Below are positions 1-21,787 of a stretch of 64,000 nucleotides of DNA, piece by piece. Numbering within the stretch: position 1 is the stretch's first letter; the number at the start of each line of letters is the position of its first letter. A program made the translations under genes and the position numbers. Source of the stretch: Rebecca billardiae RCC1528 (Eukaryota > Protista > Haptophyta); contig OZ251224.1 in NCBI GenBank assembly GCA_965240325.2, positions 3,534,001-3,598,000 on the forward strand, read 5' to 3'. The notes beneath the pieces are model-generated. The model ran no database searches. It worked only from the letters and a program-made list of their open reading frames with translations, and was not told the DNA's origin.

Positions 1-1104
1 GGGGTGCCTTTCGCGCTGCGCAAGGCGCTCGTGTGGCTGCTCATTCCTTCGCCCGTCACCATGCTGCGCGTCGACGAGCCGGAGGCCCTCAAGCGCGTCT
101 TCTTTGGCGGCGAGCCTTGGCTGGTGCAGTGCAGCCGCACGGGTCTGACGCGGCGCTCGTTCAGCCAGGCCTCGCGCTACCTGCGCAATGTCACGCACAT
201 CGCCGTGCTCGACTGTGACGCGCCGCTCCCCACGAGCGGCAAGACCACGCGCGACAAGTTCAAGCTGCCCGCGCACGGCGTGTTCACGTGCGCCAACGGC
301 TACGGCCCCAAGCCCGTGCCGGACCGGACGGTCCGCGCGGCGTACAGCCTCGCGGCGCACGCGCGCTCAGCGGCGGCCCTGCCGATACACAGCCTGAGCA
401 CGCAGGCCGAGCTCGACCACGCGTGCCACGCCCGCCCGTGCCTCGCCATCGCCGAGCGCGCCGTCCGCTCAGACGTGATCCAAGCCGTCTCCGCGCGGCA
501 CCGCCGGCTGCGCGTGCTCACCGTGCCGGCGACGCACGCGCTCGCGCTGGGCGAGGACACGAGCGCGGAGGTCGTCGCACTCCGATCCCAGCCGGCCGCC
601 CGCGGCGCCACCGCCGCGGACGAGGATGCACCCGACACGGAGGCGCAGCCGCCCGTGTGGTTTGTGCGCGCGTACGACGGCGCTGCCAAGAACGATGTCG
701 ACGAGCTGTCGGCATTTGCGGTGGCGATCCCGTTCGAGGTGCCGTCGGGCGGGGATGCGTCGGCCTTCCTGTCGCCGGCCCCCGCCGTGGAGCTCAAGAC
801 GCTCTCCCGCGCCTCGGCGGCGGCCGAGCGGCGCAGGGCGGAGATGGAGCGGCGGCAGCAGATGGCCAAGGAGGAGGAGGAGTACAAGAATGCTTTCTTT
901 GCTGGCGCGGGCGAGGACGACGAGGACACGGACGGAGCCTCAGCCACGCGGGCCTCCTCGCCCGGCGCGGCGAGTGGCGATACCGATGGCGCGGGTGCGG
1001 GCTCGTTCGAGAGGGATTTCGAAGACGACGACGACGACGACGACGATGACGACGACGACGGCGACGAAGGTGGCGACGACGACGAGGTGATCGAGCTGAG
1101 CTAG
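1..1104 (+). CDS. Hypothetical protein, possible thioredoxin-like fold, charged helix and Asp-rich C-terminus; start probably just upstream of window
   Basis: Open frame from base 1 to TAG 1102-1104 with protein-like composition (VFFGGEPWLVQC, IAVLDC...SGKT..KFKL) and a GAC-repeat poly-D tail; sequence becomes AT-richer right after the stop. Confidence 0.7.
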   Translation, partial: GVPFALRKALVWLLIPSPVTMLRVDEPEALKRVFFGGEPWLVQCSRTGLTRRSFSQASRYLRNVTHIAVLDCDAPLPTSGKTTRDKFKLPAHGVFTCANGYGPKPVPDRTVRAAYSLAAHARSAAALPIHSLSTQAELDHACHARPCLAIAERAVRSDVIQAVSARHRRLRVLTVPATHALALGEDTSAEVVALRSQPAARGATAADEDAPDTEAQPPVWFVRAYDGAAKNDVDELSAFAVAIPFEVPSGGDASAFLSPAPAVELKTLSRASAAAERRRAEMERRQQMAKEEEEYKNAFFAGAGEDDEDTDGASATRASSPGAASGDTDGAGAGSFERDFEDDDDDDDDDDDDGDEGGDDDEVIELS

Positions 1105-14219: not shown

Positions 14220-14654
14220 GGGCACGCGCGCGGCGGCCGCACCCACGCGCTCGTCCGCGCGGGCGTCGGCGCGCCTGGGCTCAGCGCGCGTGGCGGGCGG
14301 GAGCTCTGAGCTCTCGTGGGACGGACGTCCGGCGGGGCTGCAACACTTGCAGACTTGCTTGGTCCGGCTTCCGCATAACTAACTTACTTGGTCCGGCGTT
14401 TTTTACTTGGTCCGTGCTTTTTTACTTGGATTGGCGTCTGTTTACTTGGATTGGCGGTTTATGCGGCGTGACGAACGTTTTTTACTCCGATTGGCGCCTG
14501 CTTACTCCGATTGGCGGTTTATGCGGCCCGAACCCGTGACGAAATACCAAGTAATTTCCAAGTAGCGCAAAGTAAGCAATTTGTGCGCAAAGCACGCAAT
14601 TTGGCGAGTTTGGCGAGCCGGATCGTGGAGAGAAACAGGAAGAGCGGAGACTGG

Positions 14655-16101
14655 ATGGCGTCAATCACGCCTTAAGGCCAAAACCGCGCCGTTGCTCGAG
14701 GCGAACGGGCTGGAGCATGGCGACGCGCCTGACAAGCGGGCGCTCGTGCATGGCGCCTTCTTCACGCTCGGCGCCGCGTCGTGCATCACGCACAACAGCG
14801 TGATCATGGCCGTCGCCTACTTTCGCGCGGCCCTGGGCACGTCTGTGCTCGCGCAGATCGCGCTCGCGTACAACGTCACGCTGCTGGGCTCGATGGGCTA
14901 CCTCATCTTCGGCGCGCCGCGCTCGCCCTCGCTCGCCGTGTACAGCCTTGCGCTCCGGGCCGCGATGAGTACGGCGTGCCTCCTGAACTGCGCGCTCGTC
15001 GCCGCCGTGCTCGCGCGCCTCAACATCCGCGCGCACGTGCTGCTGCCCCTGGTCTCGCTCAATGGGTTCGCGGCCGGGCTGACGCAGGGACTGGGCGCGT
15101 CTCTGGGCGGCCTATTCGACCCGTACTCCTTCGTGCGCGGCTGCTCGAGCCAGCAGCTCGCCGGCTCGGGCTTTGGCGTGCTCATGCCAACACTGACACA
15201 GCTCGCGCTGCTGCCGCGCTCGGCCGCGGCGCGCTCGGCCGCCGAGCTGCGTGCGTGCGCACGCATGGGCGCGGTGGTGAGCGCGGCAATCGGCGGTGCG
15301 GTGTGCGTGGCGGGCCTGCTCGCAGTACAGCACCTCCGTTTCACCCGCTGCTGGCGCGCCGTCGACTCGCAATGCGCGCGCGAGCCGGGCCAGTGCGCGC
15401 CTAGACCGCCCGTCGGCAGCGAGGCCGCGCGAGCCAACCCTGCAGAGGACACCGTGGGCAAGTGCGCGGCAGGCGGGTACACGAAGGTGCTGCGCACGCG
15501 GCTCACGCAGCTGCGGTGGTGCATGCTCGCGCAGCTCGTCAACGAGTTTTCATTCGTCTCGCTGATGCTGCTCTCGCCGGCGCTCCCGACGCCGGGCGCC
15601 GCCCTCTGCGCCGCCGGCACTCCCAGCGGCGCCAGCGGCAGCGTGGGCGGACGCGTGGCCGCTGCGTGCTTCTGGCGCGCGTTGCTGCCGACTGTGCTCC
15701 TGATCGCGGCGAATGTGGTCTCGTTCGCCGGCCGCGTGGCGGCCTCTTTCGCCGGGCTGGGAGAGCCGCGCGCGGCCGAGCTGCTCGGGCCGGGCGGGCG
15801 CGCCTCTGCGCTCGTCCTGCTGGTGGCAGTGTGCGTCGCCGCGCCGGTCGCGGCCGCGGCGCACATGAGCGCAGTGCATGTGGGGCGCCAAGCGGCGCTC
15901 TCGCCTTGGGTGCTCGTCGGCGTGTTCGGCGCGGTCTCGTTCGCTTCGGGCTTCAGCGTCCTCTCGCTCAGCCAGCTCGCGCAGCGCTTGTGCAGTCACT
16001 CGCTCGAGTCGCCGTGCGAGATCACCGCGCAGTTCACGTGGGCGTCGATCAACGTCGGCGCGTTCTGCGCGACCTTGCTCTCGCTCGCGGTGCTGCGCTA
16101 A
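14655..16101 (+). CDS. Equilibrative nucleoside transporter (ENT/SLC29)-like multi-TM protein; start codon ambiguous
   Basis: About 11 hydrophobic helices; TM1 FFTLGAASCITHNSVIMAVAYF resembles ENT TM1; later NVVSFAGR and SFASGF motifs. First in-frame ATG (~14806) lies inside TM1; the ATG at 14655 is one base out of frame. Confidence 0.7.
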
Positions 16102-16272: not shown

Positions 16273-19188
16273 CTACCTAGCAGAGCCGCAGGCCAGCAGG
16301 TACTCTGGGTAGGCGTACTCGGGGTGCAGAAGCACCAGCTCAGCCCCGTCGGGACCCTCGAGCACGAGCGAGTGGTAGTGGAGCGGGCCCGCCTTGCGGC
16401 CGTCGAGCCCGGGGATGCGCGCGAGCTCGCGCATGCCGTCCGCGTCGAACGCCAGCTGGCCGTCGGCCGCGCGCAGCCGGCGCCACGCGGCGTGGTCGGC
16501 CGCTTCTGACGCCTCGTCTGCACCGGACATTGCCGCCGACTCCCGCTGCGCGCGCACGCTCGCGCCGAGCGCGACGCGCGCGAGCACGATGAAGCGCACA
16601 GCGCGCGGCGCGCCGTCGGCGGCGTGGGCCCAGAGCTGCTCCTCCAGCGCGGGCGCAGGCCGCTCGGCGCTCGGCGCCGCGGCCTGCTCCGCCGCGCGCG
16701 CGGCGTCGTGGGCAAAGTGCACGCCGCCAGCGAGCGCGCCGGGCGCGTGCGCCAGCGCCATGAAGCCGCGGCCGAGCAGCGGGTGGAGCACGCCCGGCCG
16801 CACGCCGATGAGCACGCGCGCCTCGCACGCTCGCTCGTCCAGAGCGCCCGGGAGGCTGAGCACGGGCTCGTGCGCGGCGCCGTGCACAAGCCTCTGCCCG
16901 TACCCGCGCGCGCGCGCGCGCTCGAGCTCGCTGCCGACCGCGCCGCACGCGGCCGCGTAGCGGCGCCAGAGGGACGGGTGCTCGACCCGCCACGCCTGGC
17001 AGAGCTCGAGGCCTCGACCGTCAGCGCCGGCCGCGCGGAGCGCGCGCTTGAGCACGCGGAACTCGTCGGCACTCGTCGGCATGTCAGCCAGGGGGTGGCT
17101 CAAAGCCAGCAGCGCGCGCTCCGCCAGCGACGACGCGAGCGCGGCGGCGCGGCCCGGCGCGGCCGTGGGCCGGGCGCTCGCGGCCTCGAGCCTGACGAGG
17201 GACACGTCGCCGCCGCCCTGCAGCGGGCAGGTCCAGTGGTGAGGCACGCTCGCGTCGATGGAGCCCAGCCCGAGGGTGGCGCCCCCGAGCACCGCGCCCC
17301 CGATGGCGCTCACCGCCGAGCGCGCAAGCCCCGAGACGGCGTCAAACTGCATGCTGCTGGCGTCCGAGTCCGCTGCCGGCTGATTGGGCGAGCCGTATTT
17401 GTATGGAGGCGGCGGCGGCGGCGGCGGCGCCTCGGGGTCGCGCTCCTCCGAGGCAGCGCGCATCCGGGAGGAGGGCGGGTGCGGCCACAGCCAGAAGGGG
17501 CGCCCGGCCGACGCGCCCGCGCCCGCTCCGTGCGGTTGCCACCCGAGCCGCGCAGGGCAGGTGAACGCCCGCTTCGCTCGACGGCAGCACACGGCGCAGC
17601 CGCACGCGACCAGCACGAATGCCAGCGTGCCGAGGACGACTCCGAGCAGGGCGCGTCGCCAGCGCGGATACGAGCACACCGCGCCGCCCGACTCGTCGCG
17701 ATCCGCGCAGCACATGCCGTCCTCGGCCGCGCGGATCTGGCAGAGCAGCACGTCCACGCGCGCGCCGAGCGTGCACTTGCTCGCGACGAGCGCGTCGCCC
17801 GCCGCCTCGTCATCGCGCGCGAGCATGCACGCAGCGTGCACAGCGTCGGAGTCACCCGCGGAGCCGTGGCCGTCGTCTGTGGGCGCGCCGCACACCTGGT
17901 CGATCATGTGCACGAGGCGGTGCGACGAGTACGCGGAGGCGGCCCGCGCGGGCGCGCCGCTCGGCAGCGCCGGCGCGGCAGGGCCGAGCTTGCACTCGCC
18001 CGCGTCTGCGGCGCACCGCGCCGCGAGCGGGCAGTGCTGCCCAAACGGCTGTCGCGCGTCGTCGTCGAGCGGGAGCGCGCAGCCCAGGTGGAGCATGGTG
18101 TACGGGCACTCGCGCACGCAGCGGCTGAAGCAGCAGAAGCGCGTGCTCATGTAGCTGCACCCCTTGGCGCACGCGCTGCAGTCGAGCCGCTCCGGAGCGG
18201 CCGAGGCCGAGGAGGAGGAGGAGGAGGAGGCGCCGTCGCCGCCGCCGAATAGGCTCATGGCCGCGTCGGCCGCGCCGCGCGACTGCACGAGGGCGTCGAT
18301 CGAGGGCAGCCCGGCGCCGAGCAGCGCGGGCGGCTGCGGCTCGTCCGCCTCGAGCTCGGCCTGGAGGACGTGCGCGCTGGCGTTCTGACCGCTGCCGCCC
18401 GCGTGCCGCACGGTCCACAGCCGGGTGTCAGCCGCCGGCCGCGCGTGCGGCGCGCGCCCGACCGTGCAGCCCACGAGCAGTGCAGCGCCGAGCGCGACGG
18501 CGACGATGGCGGTGACGCGGATGAGTCGGCGCGGCCGCGCGAACGAGCCCTCGTCGACGACGCGGACAGGCGCGTCGCTGCGGGCGTCCGACGGAGCGAT
18601 CAGCGCCGAGCGCGCCGGGATGCCGGTCGTGCGGCCGTGCTCAGACGCGGCCGGTGCGGCCGGCCGCCCCGCAGGGAGCACGGCGGCGGCGGTGGCAGTG
18701 CGGGAGGAGGCGTCCGCCGGCGCGAGCGAGACATGCTCTGCGACGCTCGGGTGGGTGTCGCTCTCGGCGACACCCGCGGGCGGACCCAAGCCGCTCGGTG
18801 CCGTGTCGCGGGCGTCACCGCAGGCGAGCGCCTCGGCGGCCGGCACAGAGGCCGGGATGGCGGGCTCGCGCGCGTCCGCTGGAGCCTCGGCGCGTTGCGC
18901 GTCGGCCGGAGCGCGCACGTCCAGCTGGCTGGCCTCTGCAGCAGCCAATCCAGCTATCGCCGTGGCAGGTGCGCGCGGTGCATCTGAGGCATCTGAGGCA
19001 TGCGCAACCGCCTCCGCATGCGGGGCGTCTGCCCGAGGGGAATCGACTGGGAGCAGGGATGCGTCGTCGGCGCTCTCGGCGGCAGGTGAGAAGGCATCGG
19101 CTGCCACGTCGTCGTCGCTGCCGTCATCCGCAGAGGCCACGGACGCCTGCTCCTCCTCGAGCGCGTCGTAAAAGTGTAGCGCGAGCAT
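16273..19188 (-). CDS. Two-TM membrane protein with Cys-rich loop, PPxY motif and C-terminal degenerate PARP (ART) catalytic domain
   Basis: ATG 19188; TM ~18525-18460 and ~17652-17585. C-terminus RVEHPSLWRRY..EARVLIG..GGVHFAHDA..FIVLARVALG..HYHSL..ELVLLHPEYAYPEYLL matches the tankyrase-type PARP pattern. Confidence 0.8.
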   Translation of the reverse strand: MLALHFYDALEEEQASVASADDGSDDDVAADAFSPAAESADDASLLPVDSPRADAPHAEAVAHASDASDAPRAPATAIAGLAAAEASQLDVRAPADAQRAEAPADAREPAIPASVPAAEALACGDARDTAPSGLGPPAGVAESDTHPSVAEHVSLAPADASSRTATAAAVLPAGRPAAPAASEHGRTTGIPARSALIAPSDARSDAPVRVVDEGSFARPRRLIRVTAIVAVALGAALLVGCTVGRAPHARPAADTRLWTVRHAGGSGQNASAHVLQAELEADEPQPPALLGAGLPSIDALVQSRGAADAAMSLFGGGDGASSSSSSSASAAPERLDCSACAKGCSYMSTRFCCFSRCVRECPYTMLHLGCALPLDDDARQPFGQHCPLAARCAADAGECKLGPAAPALPSGAPARAASAYSSHRLVHMIDQVCGAPTDDGHGSAGDSDAVHAACMLARDDEAAGDALVASKCTLGARVDVLLCQIRAAEDGMCCADRDESGGAVCSYPRWRRALLGVVLGTLAFVLVACGCAVCCRRAKRAFTCPARLGWQPHGAGAGASAGRPFWLWPHPPSSRMRAASEERDPEAPPPPPPPPYKYGSPNQPAADSDASSMQFDAVSGLARSAVSAIGGAVLGGATLGLGSIDASVPHHWTCPLQGGGDVSLVRLEAASARPTAAPGRAAALASSLAERALLALSHPLADMPTSADEFRVLKRALRAAGADGRGLELCQAWRVEHPSLWRRYAAACGAVGSELERARARGYGQRLVHGAAHEPVLSLPGALDERACEARVLIGVRPGVLHPLLGRGFMALAHAPGALAGGVHFAHDAARAAEQAAAPSAERPAPALEEQLWAHAADGAPRAVRFIVLARVALGASVRAQRESAAMSGADEASEAADHAAWRRLRAADGQLAFDADGMRELARIPGLDGRKAGPLHYHSLVLEGPDGAELVLLHPEYAYPEYLLACGSAR

Positions 19189-19501
19189 CCTGTCGCGGGC
19201 GGAGGTGGTGGGCCGGCGCCGCAAAAACTAAGATCGGGGACCACGGGACTTGTGAGCATCGGGGACCAGGGACCGTCCGGCTCGCCGGCCAATCCAATCT
19301 CAAATCTGTCAGTCAGGAATCAAGGGTTCCTTTTTGGTTTGGTCAGGCACAACCGGGTACCCGCCACCGGAGTCCCGGACGCACGCGCGGGTCCGCCCGT
19401 GGGAGAGCGGCCGGGGCAGAAAAGCGCGCGCGCGGAGCCGGTTGCGCCGTCCCTGCTGGAACCATCGAGCCAGTGAATCGTCATCGCGCGGGTCGAGCGT
19501 C

Positions 19502-21787
19502 ATGGCGCGCTTCAGCGTCGTCGGCGTGCTCGCGCTCGCCGCGAGCGCATGCCCGCCGGCGAGCGCACGGCCGAGTACCACGCCCGCCCGCTCGTGGCGA
19601 ACCTCTGCGCGCCCGGTGCCGCTGCTGCGACGAGCCGCACCGCCGCGCGCGCGCGTGACGGGCACCGAGGGCGCCGCGCGCGCGGCGCGCCGCGAGGAGC
19701 GCGCGGCGCAGTGGGCGCAGCTGGGCGCGCTGTGCAAGCAGGAGGCGCCACTCCTCGTCGCGTCCACCTTCTTCATGATCGGCGCCGCCGTGTGCGACGC
19801 CTCGATCCCCTACTACACGTCGGCCGCGCTGTACGCCGCAACCTCGGGCGCAGCGGCTGAGCCGGGCGCGTGCGCGCGCGCGGTGCGTCGGCTGGTGGGC
19901 GTGGGCGTGCTCTCCGCGCTGTTCACGGGCGCGCGGGGCTGCGCGTTCTGGATCGCGGGCGCGCGCGTCCTCCGCCGCCTCAAGGCGCGCCTCTTCGCCG
20001 CGCTGCTCGGCAAGCCGACCCCGTTCCACGACAAGCTCGAGTCCTCGACGCTCGCGAGCCGGCTCGCGTCGGACACGGGCAAGATCTCGGACGTGGTGAG
20101 CTTCAACCTGAACATCATCGCGCGGCAGGGGATCCAGGCCGTCGTCGCGCTCGCGTGGCTCCTCTCCATCCACGCGCGGCTCACGCTTGTCCTCATCGCC
20201 GGGCTGGTCGGCACGTTTGGGCTCAACCAGATCTACACCAAGGTGAACCGTGACCTGGCGGCGCGCACGCAGACGGCGGTGGCGGAGGCGACGACGGTGG
20301 CGACGGAGGACTTCCGGCTGGTGCGCACGATCAAGGTGCACGCCACCGAGCAGCGCGAGGCCGAGCGGTACGACGCCACCTGCCGCCGCATCGAGGCCCT
20401 GCAGGAGAAGCAGGGCACGGTGTACGGCCTTGCGCGCGTGGCCAACGGCATGAGCACCGCGCTGCTCGGCGCGGTGGTGCTGGCGGTGGGGAGCTCGCTG
20501 GTGGCGCGCGGCGCGCTCTCGGCGCAGCAGCTCACCACGTTCGTGCTGAGCGGCTCGACCGTCACCTCCGCCTCCTCCGGCATCGGCGAGCAGTGGGTGA
20601 AGGTGCAGGAGGCGCTGGGCGCTGCTGAGGAGGTCCTCAGGCTGATGCAGCCGCAGCCGCAGCTGCAGCCGCAGGCGCTGCCGCTGCCGCAGACGCAGAC
20701 GCAGACGCAGACTCAGACGCAGACGCAGCCGCTGCCGACGCAGTCGCAGCCGCAGCAGGGGCAGGCACGGGAGCAGGCGCAGGCGTGGGAGCAGGCGCTG
20801 GCGGAGGCGCAGGCACAGCCGGATCGGGATGCACAGGGGCAGGCCGTGTCGCAGCAGCCGCCCGCGCGAGACGCGCCGCGCGAGACGCGGGCCGCGCCTC
20901 GGGAGGGCGAGGCGGCTGCGGAGCCGCCCCACCCGCTGCCGGGCGCAGGCGCTGCCGCCGGGCCTTTGGCGCACGCCGAGGCGCCCGCCATCGAGCTGCG
21001 CGACGTGAGCTTCTCGTACCCCGGCGCGCCCGGCGTGCCCGTGCTGCGCGGCGTGAACATGGTGGTGCGGCGCGGGCAGCTCGCCGCGCTGGTCGGCGCG
21101 TCGGGCTCAGGCAAGTCGTCGGTGATGCGGCTGCTCTGCGGGCTGTACAGCGCCGACGGCGGCGAGGTGCGGCTGGAGGGCGCCGAGCTGGCCGAGCTCG
21201 AGCGCGCGGCGCTCGCGCGGCGCGTGGCGTGGCTGCCACAGGAGCCCCAGCTCTTCATCGGCTCGATCGGCGAGAACATCGCCTACGGGCTCGAGCCTGG
21301 CTCCTTCTCAGCCGAGCAGGTGCGCGCGGCCGCCGAGCGCGCCAACGCGCACGGCTTCGTCACCGAGCTGGGCGGGTACGAGACGCAGGTGGGCGAGGGC
21401 GGCGGCAGGCTGAGCGGCGGGCAGCGGCAGCGCATCGCCGTGGCGCGCGCGCTCATGCGCGGCTCGAGCGTCCTCCTCCTCGACGAGCCCACATCCGCGC
21501 TCGACGCCGCCTCGGAGCGCGTCGTGCACGACGTGGTGCGCACGCTCGTGCCGGAGCGGACGGTGCTCATGATCGCGCACCGGATCTCGACGGTGAAGGA
21601 GGCGGACGTGATCTTCGTGATGGACGGCGGCGTGGTGGTCGAACAGGGCACGCACCAGGAGCTGCTCGCACGCGGCGGCGCGTACGCCGAGCTCGTGCAC
21701 GGCGCGCGGGGACGGCGTGCTGCCAGCGGCGGCATGCTGCTCGGCGATGACGCGCCCACCGCCGGCAGCAGCCTGAGCGCGCGATGA
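19502..21787 (+). CDS. ABCB (TAP-like) half-size ABC transporter, with probable bipartite signal+transit presequence
   Basis: TMD followed by NBD: GASGSGKS, PQEP, LSGGQRQRIAVAR, LLLDEPTSALD, IAHR. N-terminus MARFSVVGVLALAASA then an R/S/P-rich stretch. Q/T microsatellite linker ~20650-20780. Confidence 0.95.
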   Translation: MARFSVVGVLALAASACPPASARPSTTPARSWRTSARPVPLLRRAAPPRARVTGTEGAARAARREERAAQWAQLGALCKQEAPLLVASTFFMIGAAVCDASIPYYTSAALYAATSGAAAEPGACARAVRRLVGVGVLSALFTGARGCAFWIAGARVLRRLKARLFAALLGKPTPFHDKLESSTLASRLASDTGKISDVVSFNLNIIARQGIQAVVALAWLLSIHARLTLVLIAGLVGTFGLNQIYTKVNRDLAARTQTAVAEATTVATEDFRLVRTIKVHATEQREAERYDATCRRIEALQEKQGTVYGLARVANGMSTALLGAVVLAVGSSLVARGALSAQQLTTFVLSGSTVTSASSGIGEQWVKVQEALGAAEEVLRLMQPQPQLQPQALPLPQTQTQTQTQTQTQPLPTQSQPQQGQAREQAQAWEQALAEAQAQPDRDAQGQAVSQQPPARDAPRETRAAPREGEAAAEPPHPLPGAGAAAGPLAHAEAPAIELRDVSFSYPGAPGVPVLRGVNMVVRRGQLAALVGASGSGKSSVMRLLCGLYSADGGEVRLEGAELAELERAALARRVAWLPQEPQLFIGSIGENIAYGLEPGSFSAEQVRAAAERANAHGFVTELGGYETQVGEGGGRLSGGQRQRIAVARALMRGSSVLLLDEPTSALDAASERVVHDVVRTLVPERTVLMIAHRISTVKEADVIFVMDGGVVVEQGTHQELLARGGAYAELVHGARGRRAASGGMLLGDDAPTAGSSLSAR

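Follow-up and report, generated by a model that had tools for sequence, protein, structure and literature searches.

A predicted two-pass membrane protein that is probably a pseudo-PARP descended from a receptor-like PARP

The window, the whole 64-kb stretch of DNA that was analysed, contains on its minus strand a gene whose product is referred to here as the query (CDS 16273..19188; Table 1). The maximal open reading frame, 16273..19224, counts 983 aa from a TTG and has an in-frame TAG immediately upstream; its first ATG, at 19188, gives 971 aa, and no second in-frame ATG is found in it ahead of the first transmembrane (TM) helix. GC content falls in the upstream flank, an ABC transporter gene begins ~315 bp upstream on the opposite strand, and a convergent ORF ends at 16101 on the other side. 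At the 75% GC of this DNA, a frame free of stops counts for less than it normally would, and other frames here contain chance ORFs that overlap and reach 542 aa. From codon ~120 to the end, GC3 stays between 0.85 and 1.0 without a dip, which identifies a coding frame and gives no sign of an intron in that part. Codons ~20–140 have a lower GC3 (0.55–0.82), and the first ~140 codons are the least certain stretch of the gene model. Two Logan contigs encoding the identical protein were considered as transcripts and rejected, being collinear genomic DNA that spans three genes.

Table 1. Features of the query gene and protein, in positions of the window
Feature	Position	Strand	Residues and remarks
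Whole CDS	16273..19188	minus	971 codons, then the TAG stop at 16273-16275; apparently one exon
N-terminal acidic Ala/Asp/Ser-rich low-complexity region	18517..19188	minus	aa 1-224; predicted cytosolic
TM helix 1	18460..18516	minus	aa 225-243; Kyte-Doolittle 2.43; flanking K+R: N side 4, C side 3
Loop stalk	18184..18459	minus	aa 244-335; contains a poly-Ser run
18-Cys module	17665..18183	minus	aa 336-508; no Pfam family
TM helix 2	17584..17640	minus	aa 517-535; Kyte-Doolittle 2.58; flanking K+R: N side 3, C side 5
P8Y stretch (PPPPPPPPY)	17401..17427	minus	aa 588-596; contains PPPY, aa 593-596; cytosolic linker
PARP/ARTD-fold domain	16276..17262	minus	aa 643-971, ~330 aa
VLIG	16804..16815	minus	I794 in the triad His column; H in 133/159 aligned rows, 10 gapped
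GVHFA	16711..16725	minus	H824 in the triad Tyr column
E950, retained triad Glu	16339..16341	minus	placed by alignment
AYPEYL	16297..16314	minus	C-terminal strand; conserved across the family

The query contains exactly two strong hydrophobic segments (Kyte-Doolittle, 19-residue window). The loop between them measures 273 aa and carries 18 cysteines, all within aa 337–505, which bears out an earlier, sequence-only reading in which a Cys-rich loop of ~270 aa lies between two TM helices. The basic stretch RRAKR directly follows TM helix 2, and the only N-X-S/T sequon, NAS at 269, lies in the stalk. The positive-inside rule and the sequon positions agree with an N-in, loop-out, C-in arrangement, both in the query and in its sister protein P0152, described below. 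Both ends of the query are thereby predicted to be cytosolic and the 18-Cys module to lie outside or in an organelle lumen, where it may act as a sensor. The N-terminal region (aa 1–224) gave no match in the Pfam scan.

The 18-Cys module is 42% identical (E 2e-26) to a module of a calpain membrane protein (G000:C7) and 38% identical to that of P0152, and its 18 cysteines are invariant across the three proteins. A module HMM matches P0152 at 2.9e-33, and the query's genome holds two copies only, in the query and in the calpain fusion. An ESM Atlas search with the module gave no match, word-index searches with the Cys regions of the query and of P0152 added no further relative, the first retrieving the query's own entry alone and the second P0152's own cluster alone, and the Cys-module alignment, scanned against metagenome contigs, yielded 179 pattern matches, 0 of them confirmed. 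The AF2 model of the module, computed from the three-sequence alignment, has a pLDDT of 46, too poor for a fold search. Its occurrence on a calpain as well suggests that the module is a reusable ectodomain of an undescribed kind.

The closest relative of the whole protein is P0152 (MMETSP Transcript_22180, 756 aa), whose 90% cluster also contains P0002, a 530-aa JGI fragment. P0152 comes from a transcript-like contig of 2.8 kb, in which one ORF encodes all 756 aa, and has the parts of the query in the same order: TM1, stalk, 18-Cys module, TM2 and PARP domain. It differs from the query in its N-terminus of ~50 aa, in its short TM2–PARP linker and in having H-Y-E and the whole NAD pocket intact. 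The two proteins are reciprocal best matches, with a BLASTP E-value of 2e-46 across both the Cys part and the PARP part, and they are sisters in the domain tree with a support of 0.94, the branch of the query being 1.8 times longer than that of P0152 and the third longest terminal branch of 131 domains. HMMER, word-index searches and the metagenome contig scan found no close orthologue of the query. The single-gene, two-TM layout is supported by an independent transcript from another protist, in which the domains have the same order; computational evidence from few sequences places the TM–Cys module–TM–PARP layout in at least two protists, and 12 relatives were counted as membrane-anchored. 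The cytosolic linker of the query does contain the PPxY motif noted earlier, but the motif is weak and is not conserved: neither P0152 nor the C7 calpain paralogue has it. At least 46 WW matches are present in the query's genome, of which 0 adjoin a PARP locus; recruitment by the PPxY motif of a WW-PARP, which is the architecture of P0010, is unsupported, as no WW match lies near the genome's PARP loci.

The C-terminal domain scores below the threshold of the PARP profile. PF00644 matches the query with 11 bits (E 0.31; gathering score 26.7 bits), the only other Pfam match of the whole query or of its last 325 aa is TM_ErbB1, which is noise, and a genome-wide PF00644 scan found 12 other loci and missed this one. 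A phmmer search of the domain against PDB sequences gave no match, and a word-index search with the PARP region returned the query's own entry only. Exhaustive HMMER searching, in contrast to Pfam alone, identified 164 relatives of the domain at E ≤ 1e-3, the best at 2.9e-20, and PF00644 is above its cut-off in 10 of the 10 best relatives, the only ones scanned. The family profile, run against the PDB, placed tankyrase-1 at the top (3.7e-20), followed by TNKS2, PARP15, PARP14, PARP10, PARP12 and ZAP. An AF2 model built on an alignment of PARP homologues (pLDDT 83, pTM 0.84) gave TNKS1/2 as top Foldseek matches (E 2e-9), together with PARP10 and PARP12, at target TM-scores of 0.65–0.75 and a probability of 1.00, and ESM Atlas returned PARP clusters at 0.95. 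The domain is a true PARP/ARTD homologue, and three lines of evidence confirm the proposed ART/PARP fold: transitive homology, the profile-to-PDB search, and AF2 with Foldseek. An R-S-E-type (cholera-toxin-like) ART was dropped as a candidate, every sequence and fold match being to H-Y-E PARPs. Descent from a marine-protist H-Y-E PARP clade, with the tankyrase catalytic domain as nearest solved relative, is the best explanation of these matches. Chrysochromulina and MMETSP occur among the taxa of the relatives.

The motifs quoted in the sequence-only reading are all present, VLIG at aa 792, GVHFA at 822, AELVL at 949 and AYPEYL at 959. The first three are not chance look-alikes: aligned with 150 relatives, they line up with the triad His, Tyr and Glu. 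The H-to-I and Y-to-H changes thus fall at true triad positions, and the erosion is wider than was first noticed: 16 of the 25 conserved positions of the pocket segment are lost, comprising the triad His (to Ile) and Tyr (to His), a second conserved Tyr column occupied by Q835, ten residues past H824, and 13 further positions. The changes include K189R, D191A, D197P, H207E, H218A and Y224F (domain numbering), at positions conserved in 95–100% of 37 aligned relatives. The pocket segment, domain positions 150–224 with limits set once the differences were known, keeps 9/25 conserved columns in the query, against 22/28 (79%) elsewhere in the domain (Fisher p 0.0023); the relatives' median retention is 96% in the segment and 90% outside it, with a minimum outside of 71%. 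The query keeps the triad Glu, in a column with E in 136/159 aligned rows and 21 gapped, and G795, the Gly of the HG motif, which is invariant. H-Y-E is found in 122 of the 150 best relatives and I-H-E in the query alone; some relatives have S or T at the triad His and keep Y and E.

The query has a PARP fold without at least two NAD+-binding residues, the feature that defines a pseudo-PARP (PMC7532188). Loss of the donor-site residues (His to Ile, both stacking Tyr and most of the pocket) means that NAD+ binding is most likely gone, and the degeneration is specific to the lineage of the query, because P0152 retains H-Y-E. Orthologues with an intact H-Y-E, combined with neutral evolution of this copy, had been named beforehand as grounds for doubting a pseudoenzyme, and P0152 supplies the first half of that combination. 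We consider it probable that the query, a predicted two-pass membrane protein encoded by an apparently intronless gene, is a pseudo-PARP descended from a receptor-like PARP that was active. The ancestor would have been a membrane-anchored ('receptor-like') ADP-ribosyltransferase, probably active, a state that would persist in P0152; in the lineage of the query the NAD+ donor site would have been dismantled and the remaining fold retained. The domain probably now binds or scaffolds without catalysis, like those of PARP13/ZAP, TASOR and plant RCD1, and the protein would link a ligand of the Cys module to cytosolic partners.

Decay is an unlikely alternative, in which function was lost with the active site and the frame stays open only since the loss is recent and stops are rare in GC-rich DNA. 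The long branch, with its rate 1.8 times that of the sister, the score below the Pfam threshold, the lack of a close orthologue in our searches and the chance ORFs in other frames are consistent with a relic, but the 971 codons run without a stop or frameshift at a high in-frame GC3, retention outside the pocket lies within the range of the relatives, and 18/18 module cysteines are kept relative to paralogues only 38–42% identical. The loss is focal and the rest is kept, which fits selection on a scaffold and not uniform drift. That the query is still an enzyme of altered chemistry, with Glu950, Gly795 and His824 as a remodelled site, appears improbable. The donor of such an enzyme could be NAD+, a different dinucleotide or a nucleotide-sugar, or its reaction could be hydrolysis instead of transfer; the retained Glu and Gly and the intact AYPEYL strand would suit this reading, and the S or T at the His column of some relatives implies that the clade tolerates change there. 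Against it, three aromatic/His donor-site contacts were lost together, along with the six residues from K189 to Y224 listed above, and the PARP folds without at least two NAD-binding residues that were tested (ZAP, RCD1 and TASOR) are inactive (PMC7532188). A wrong gene model, in which the PARP part and the membrane/Cys part belong to different genes, or are exons of different genes, fused by a chance open frame, is very improbable: the atypical codon-position composition of the first ~140 codons would allow it, but P0152, from another organism, has the same part order within a single ORF of a single transcript-like contig, the coding signal is unbroken across TM2, linker and PARP domain, and there is no room for further exons between the neighbouring genes.

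Placed among known systems, the putative pseudo-PARP resembles tankyrase 1/2 (ARTD5/6) in the C-terminal strand AE.V....AYPEYL, and tankyrases also share the NE..L.HG and FG.G.Y.AE..K..QY motifs with its clade. The label 'tankyrase-type' given earlier holds insofar as the closest solved catalytic domain is that of a tankyrase, but the query is membrane-anchored, has the triad I-H-E, and showed neither ankyrin repeats nor a SAM domain in the Pfam scan of its full length. Judged from these residues and domains, it is not a tankyrase orthologue, and poly(ADP-ribose) synthesis is unlikely. PARP16, an active mono-ART, is tail-anchored through a C-terminal TM, unlike the query, and belongs to clade 6. 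The PARPs of that clade are without the triad Glu (PMC2964712). Membrane-tethered PARPs have been described as PARP16, a sponge protein with an N-terminal TM and rhizarian clade 3 proteins (PMC4245714), and none of them is described with a Cys-rich loop between two TM helices. The pseudo-PARPs PARP13/ZAP, TASOR, plant RCD1/SRO and PARP9 have a degenerate NAD+ site and non-catalytic roles (PMC7532188, PMC4245714); they are soluble, reside in the nucleus or cytosol and have zinc-finger, WWE, macro or RST domains as partners, whereas the query is integral to a membrane, carries a Cys-rich ectodomain and keeps the Glu that most of them are without. The earlier reading did not recognise the architecture from described PARP families; membrane-anchored and dead PARPs are each known (PMC4245714, PMC7532188). 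Pseudokinase receptors and receptor enzymes, in which an ectodomain and a TM precede a cytosolic catalytic-fold domain that is dead in some, offer an analogy only, with no homology.

This disposition of domains bears on how ADP-ribosylation may be used. For the most part, ADP-ribosylation is known from the nucleus or cytosol as a signal of stress and repair. To our knowledge, its links to membranes are confined to PARP16, which is tail-anchored, and to the ecto-ARTs, which are unrelated. With a disulfide-rich module and a PARP on opposite sides of the membrane, the layout suggests that ADP-ribosylation can be wired in the manner of a receptor enzyme. The pair of P0152 and the query, one apparently active and the other apparently dead, is a natural experiment on the role of the PARP fold after catalysis has been lost. 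More tentatively, and by analogy, haptophyte-like marine protists might possess a class of receptor-type ADP-ribosyltransferases in which portable ectodomains, of the 18-Cys or another kind, relay an outside or lumenal cue to a cytosolic PARP, the query being a dead ('pseudo-receptor') member that acts as scaffold or decoy in the manner of pseudokinase receptors. Other membrane-anchored layouts are found in ~8% of the PARP clade.

The 971-aa protein (the query) is encoded by one uninterrupted open frame, which is preceded immediately 5′ by an in-frame TAG; beyond this codon the GC content drops, as in an intergenic spacer. The assembly that holds the window comprises 72 Mb in 41 contigs at about 70% GC, and in the query frame every 40-codon window after about codon 120 has a GC3 of 0.85–1.0, with GC2 close to 0.6, which marks this frame as the coding one. 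At this window size, no intron-like GC3 dip was found across TM1, the loop, TM2, the linker and the C-terminal domain. The least secure portion of the gene model is the acidic, Ala/Asp-rich stretch at codons ~20–140 (window 18769–19128), where GC3 is only 0.55–0.82; it could be either fast-evolving disordered coding sequence or non-coding, and no alternative in-frame ATG was found ahead of TM1. The gene fills its slot between an ABC half-transporter and a convergent hydrophobic ORF, for which a Pfam scan gave no match at E ≤ 1e-5. In the transporter (ABC_membrane plus ABC_tran), a long Q/T/P-rich low-complexity insert containing a (QT)n run separates the membrane domain from the ATPase.

Coordinates of the query gene, its neighbors and the related proteins
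Feature	Position	Strand	Remarks
Query open frame	window 16273-19224	minus	first ATG at 19188, 971 aa
ABC half-transporter	window 19334-21787	plus	PF00664 plus PF00005; ATG ~315 bp from query gene, by eye on sequence
Convergent ORF, 506 aa, hydrophobic	window 14581-16101	plus	end 172 bp past query stop
Calpain multi-TM protein, 1249 aa	locus L016:2823-6569 of the query's own genome (G000), contig 7, about 384822-388568	minus	Cys module and PF00648
P0152 (sister protein), 756 aa	TM1 53-71; Cys module 191-375; TM2 379-397		short N-terminus; stalk between TM1 and Cys module; PARP domain after TM2

Hydropathy analysis yields exactly two strong segments (aa 225–243 and 517–535) around a loop of 273 aa with 18 Cys at 337–505, in agreement with the two TM helices and Cys-rich loop of about 270 aa described in the sequence-only reading; the catalytic-domain motifs quoted there are likewise all in place (VLIG 792, GVHFA 822, AELVL 949, AYPEYL 959). 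The C-terminal domain is a true PARP homologue that ordinary annotation overlooks. Pfam PF00644 scores it at 11 bits (E 0.31), below the cut-off of 26.7; a whole-genome scan with this model missed the locus and detected 12 other PARP loci, and phmmer of the domain against the PDB gave no match. An exhaustive HMMER search (1.84 billion representatives) recovered 164 relatives at E ≤ 1e-3, the best at 2.9e-20 and 35% identity. PF00644 is above threshold in all ten best relatives, the only ones scanned, some of which carry fused kinase or WW domains; the named members of the relatives' clusters trace to MMETSP, a dinoflagellate and Chrysochromulina. Aligned with 37 of its relatives, the query gave a profile that matched tankyrase-1 best (3.7e-20), followed in order by tankyrase-2, PARP15, PARP14, PARP10, PARP12 and ZAP. 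The AF2 model built on this alignment (pLDDT 83, pTM 0.84) retrieved PARP catalytic domains with Foldseek (tankyrase 1/2, PARP10, PARP12; E ~1e-9 to 1e-8, target TM-score 0.65–0.75), and the ESM Atlas independently placed the domain with PARP clusters (0.95), of which a haptophyte one came first. The earlier label "tankyrase-type" suits the catalytic domain but not the whole protein, in which neither ankyrin repeats nor a SAM domain was found. At least 12 further PF00644 matches in the genome (loci L002–L013, at least 11 separate places, open frames of 159–1166 aa) indicate a large PARP repertoire.

The NAD+-binding triad is H-Y-E in 122 of the 150 listed relatives and I-H-E (I794-H824-E950) in the query alone, the three residues being those that had been read by eye; in the column of the second nicotinamide-stacking Tyr, a Y in 97% of relatives, the query has Q835. 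Domain positions 150–224 begin at the HG strand, take in the Y...Y helix and end with the loop after it; this segment matches the known NAD+ donor site. There the query keeps 9 of the 25 conserved columns (at least 80% consensus among relatives, the query being left out of the definition), compared with 22 of 28 elsewhere (Fisher p 0.0023, for segment bounds set after the data had been seen). The relatives retain a median of 96% in this segment and 90% elsewhere, with minima of 52% and 71%; the query scaffold is thus preserved to the same degree as that of ordinary members, whereas none of them has a donor site as poorly kept. Judged from this alignment, degeneration of the active site is selective to the NAD+ donor site, and the loss of triad and pocket residues on a preserved scaffold supports the proposed pseudoenzyme-type reading. 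Published work describes ZAP/PARP13 and RCD1, each missing at least two NAD-binding residues, as inactive and TASOR as a functional pseudo-PARP (PMC7532188). The query fits this standard of two or more lost residues, so its domain is predicted to be unable to bind NAD+. Altered chemistry, for which the retained Glu950 and Gly795 would speak, is a minority possibility. Among the relatives, P0085 is a second degenerate clade member, with R-A-K replacing H-Y-E and the lowest pocket conservation (52%).

The best HMMER match of the query, P0002, is a fragment, and the full-length member of its cluster is P0152 (MMETSP Transcript_22180), encoded by one ORF (249–2519) on a 2.8-kb contig with short UTR-like flanks. 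Several results point to orthology of the query and P0152. BLASTP between them gives 2e-46, spanning the Cys module and the PARP domain. When P0002 was searched back against the query genome, each of the two parts had its top match at the query locus (8.2e-23 and 4.3e-14), and the next-best PARP reached only 1.2e-4. A FastTree phylogeny built from 131 domains pairs the query with P0002 as its sister (support 0.94). The layout of two TM helices, Cys module and PARP domain is therefore ancestral to the query and P0152, and the single ORF of P0152 argues for one transcript for the query. The I and H substitutions are not shared: although the order TM1-stalk-Cys module-TM2-PARP is the same, P0152 has H-Y-E and the full pocket. 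With the long query branch (1.48 vs 0.81 for P0002; the third-longest terminal branch), the intact sister indicates that the site was lost specifically in the query lineage, alongside faster evolution. An orthologue with intact H-Y-E, combined with neutral evolution of this copy, had been named as grounds against the pseudoenzyme reading; P0152 is such an orthologue, while neutral evolution is not supported, given the focal pattern of residue loss. The query as a lineage-specific pseudo-PARP derived from a receptor-like PARP is the interpretation supported by these comparisons.

Flanking K+R counts favor an N-in, loop-out, C-in arrangement for both the query and P0152, and every N-X-S/T sequon of the two proteins lies within the loop; we infer this topology for both. 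With 42% identity (E 2e-26), the Cys module matches part of a multi-TM protein encoded on contig 7, where this part likewise lies between the first and second TM helices and is combined with a C-terminal calpain protease domain (PF00648, 5.5e-55). All 18 Cys are invariant among the query, P0152 and the calpain protein (3/3), an even number compatible with a disulfide-bonded ecto- or lumenal domain. A profile search of the query genome found only the copies in the query and the calpain protein, no Pfam family matched the module, and word search, Atlas and metagenome scan gave no relatives; its AF2 model (pLDDT 46) was unusable. The module is a real, portable domain, one ectodomain type joined to two different cytosolic enzyme domains, PARP-type and calpain. 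The PPxY motif suggested as a WW-domain ligand is present in the query as PPPY within a P8Y run at aa 588–596, and WW domains are many in its genome, but it is absent from P0152 and the calpain paralogue. Since poly-Pro runs also arise easily from GC-rich coding sequence, the motif is treated as a weak lead.

PARP16, a sponge N-terminal TM-PARP and rhizarian TM-PARPs are known from published surveys (PMC4245714). Our literature search turned up no account of a PARP with two TM helices and a Cys loop, in keeping with the initial impression that the architecture lies outside described PARP families; the query joins two known themes, membrane-tethered PARPs and dead PARPs, to an undescribed ectodomain. 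A strongly hydrophobic segment N-terminal to the PARP domain occurs in 12 of 149 relatives, so that membrane anchoring is recurrent in this protist clade. Several of the 12 look like type-I receptor-like PARPs with unrelated ectodomains (Ser/Thr/Pro stalks or other Cys-rich regions). Relatives with a TM-like segment include P0081, P0093, P0148, P0096, P0073 and P0014.
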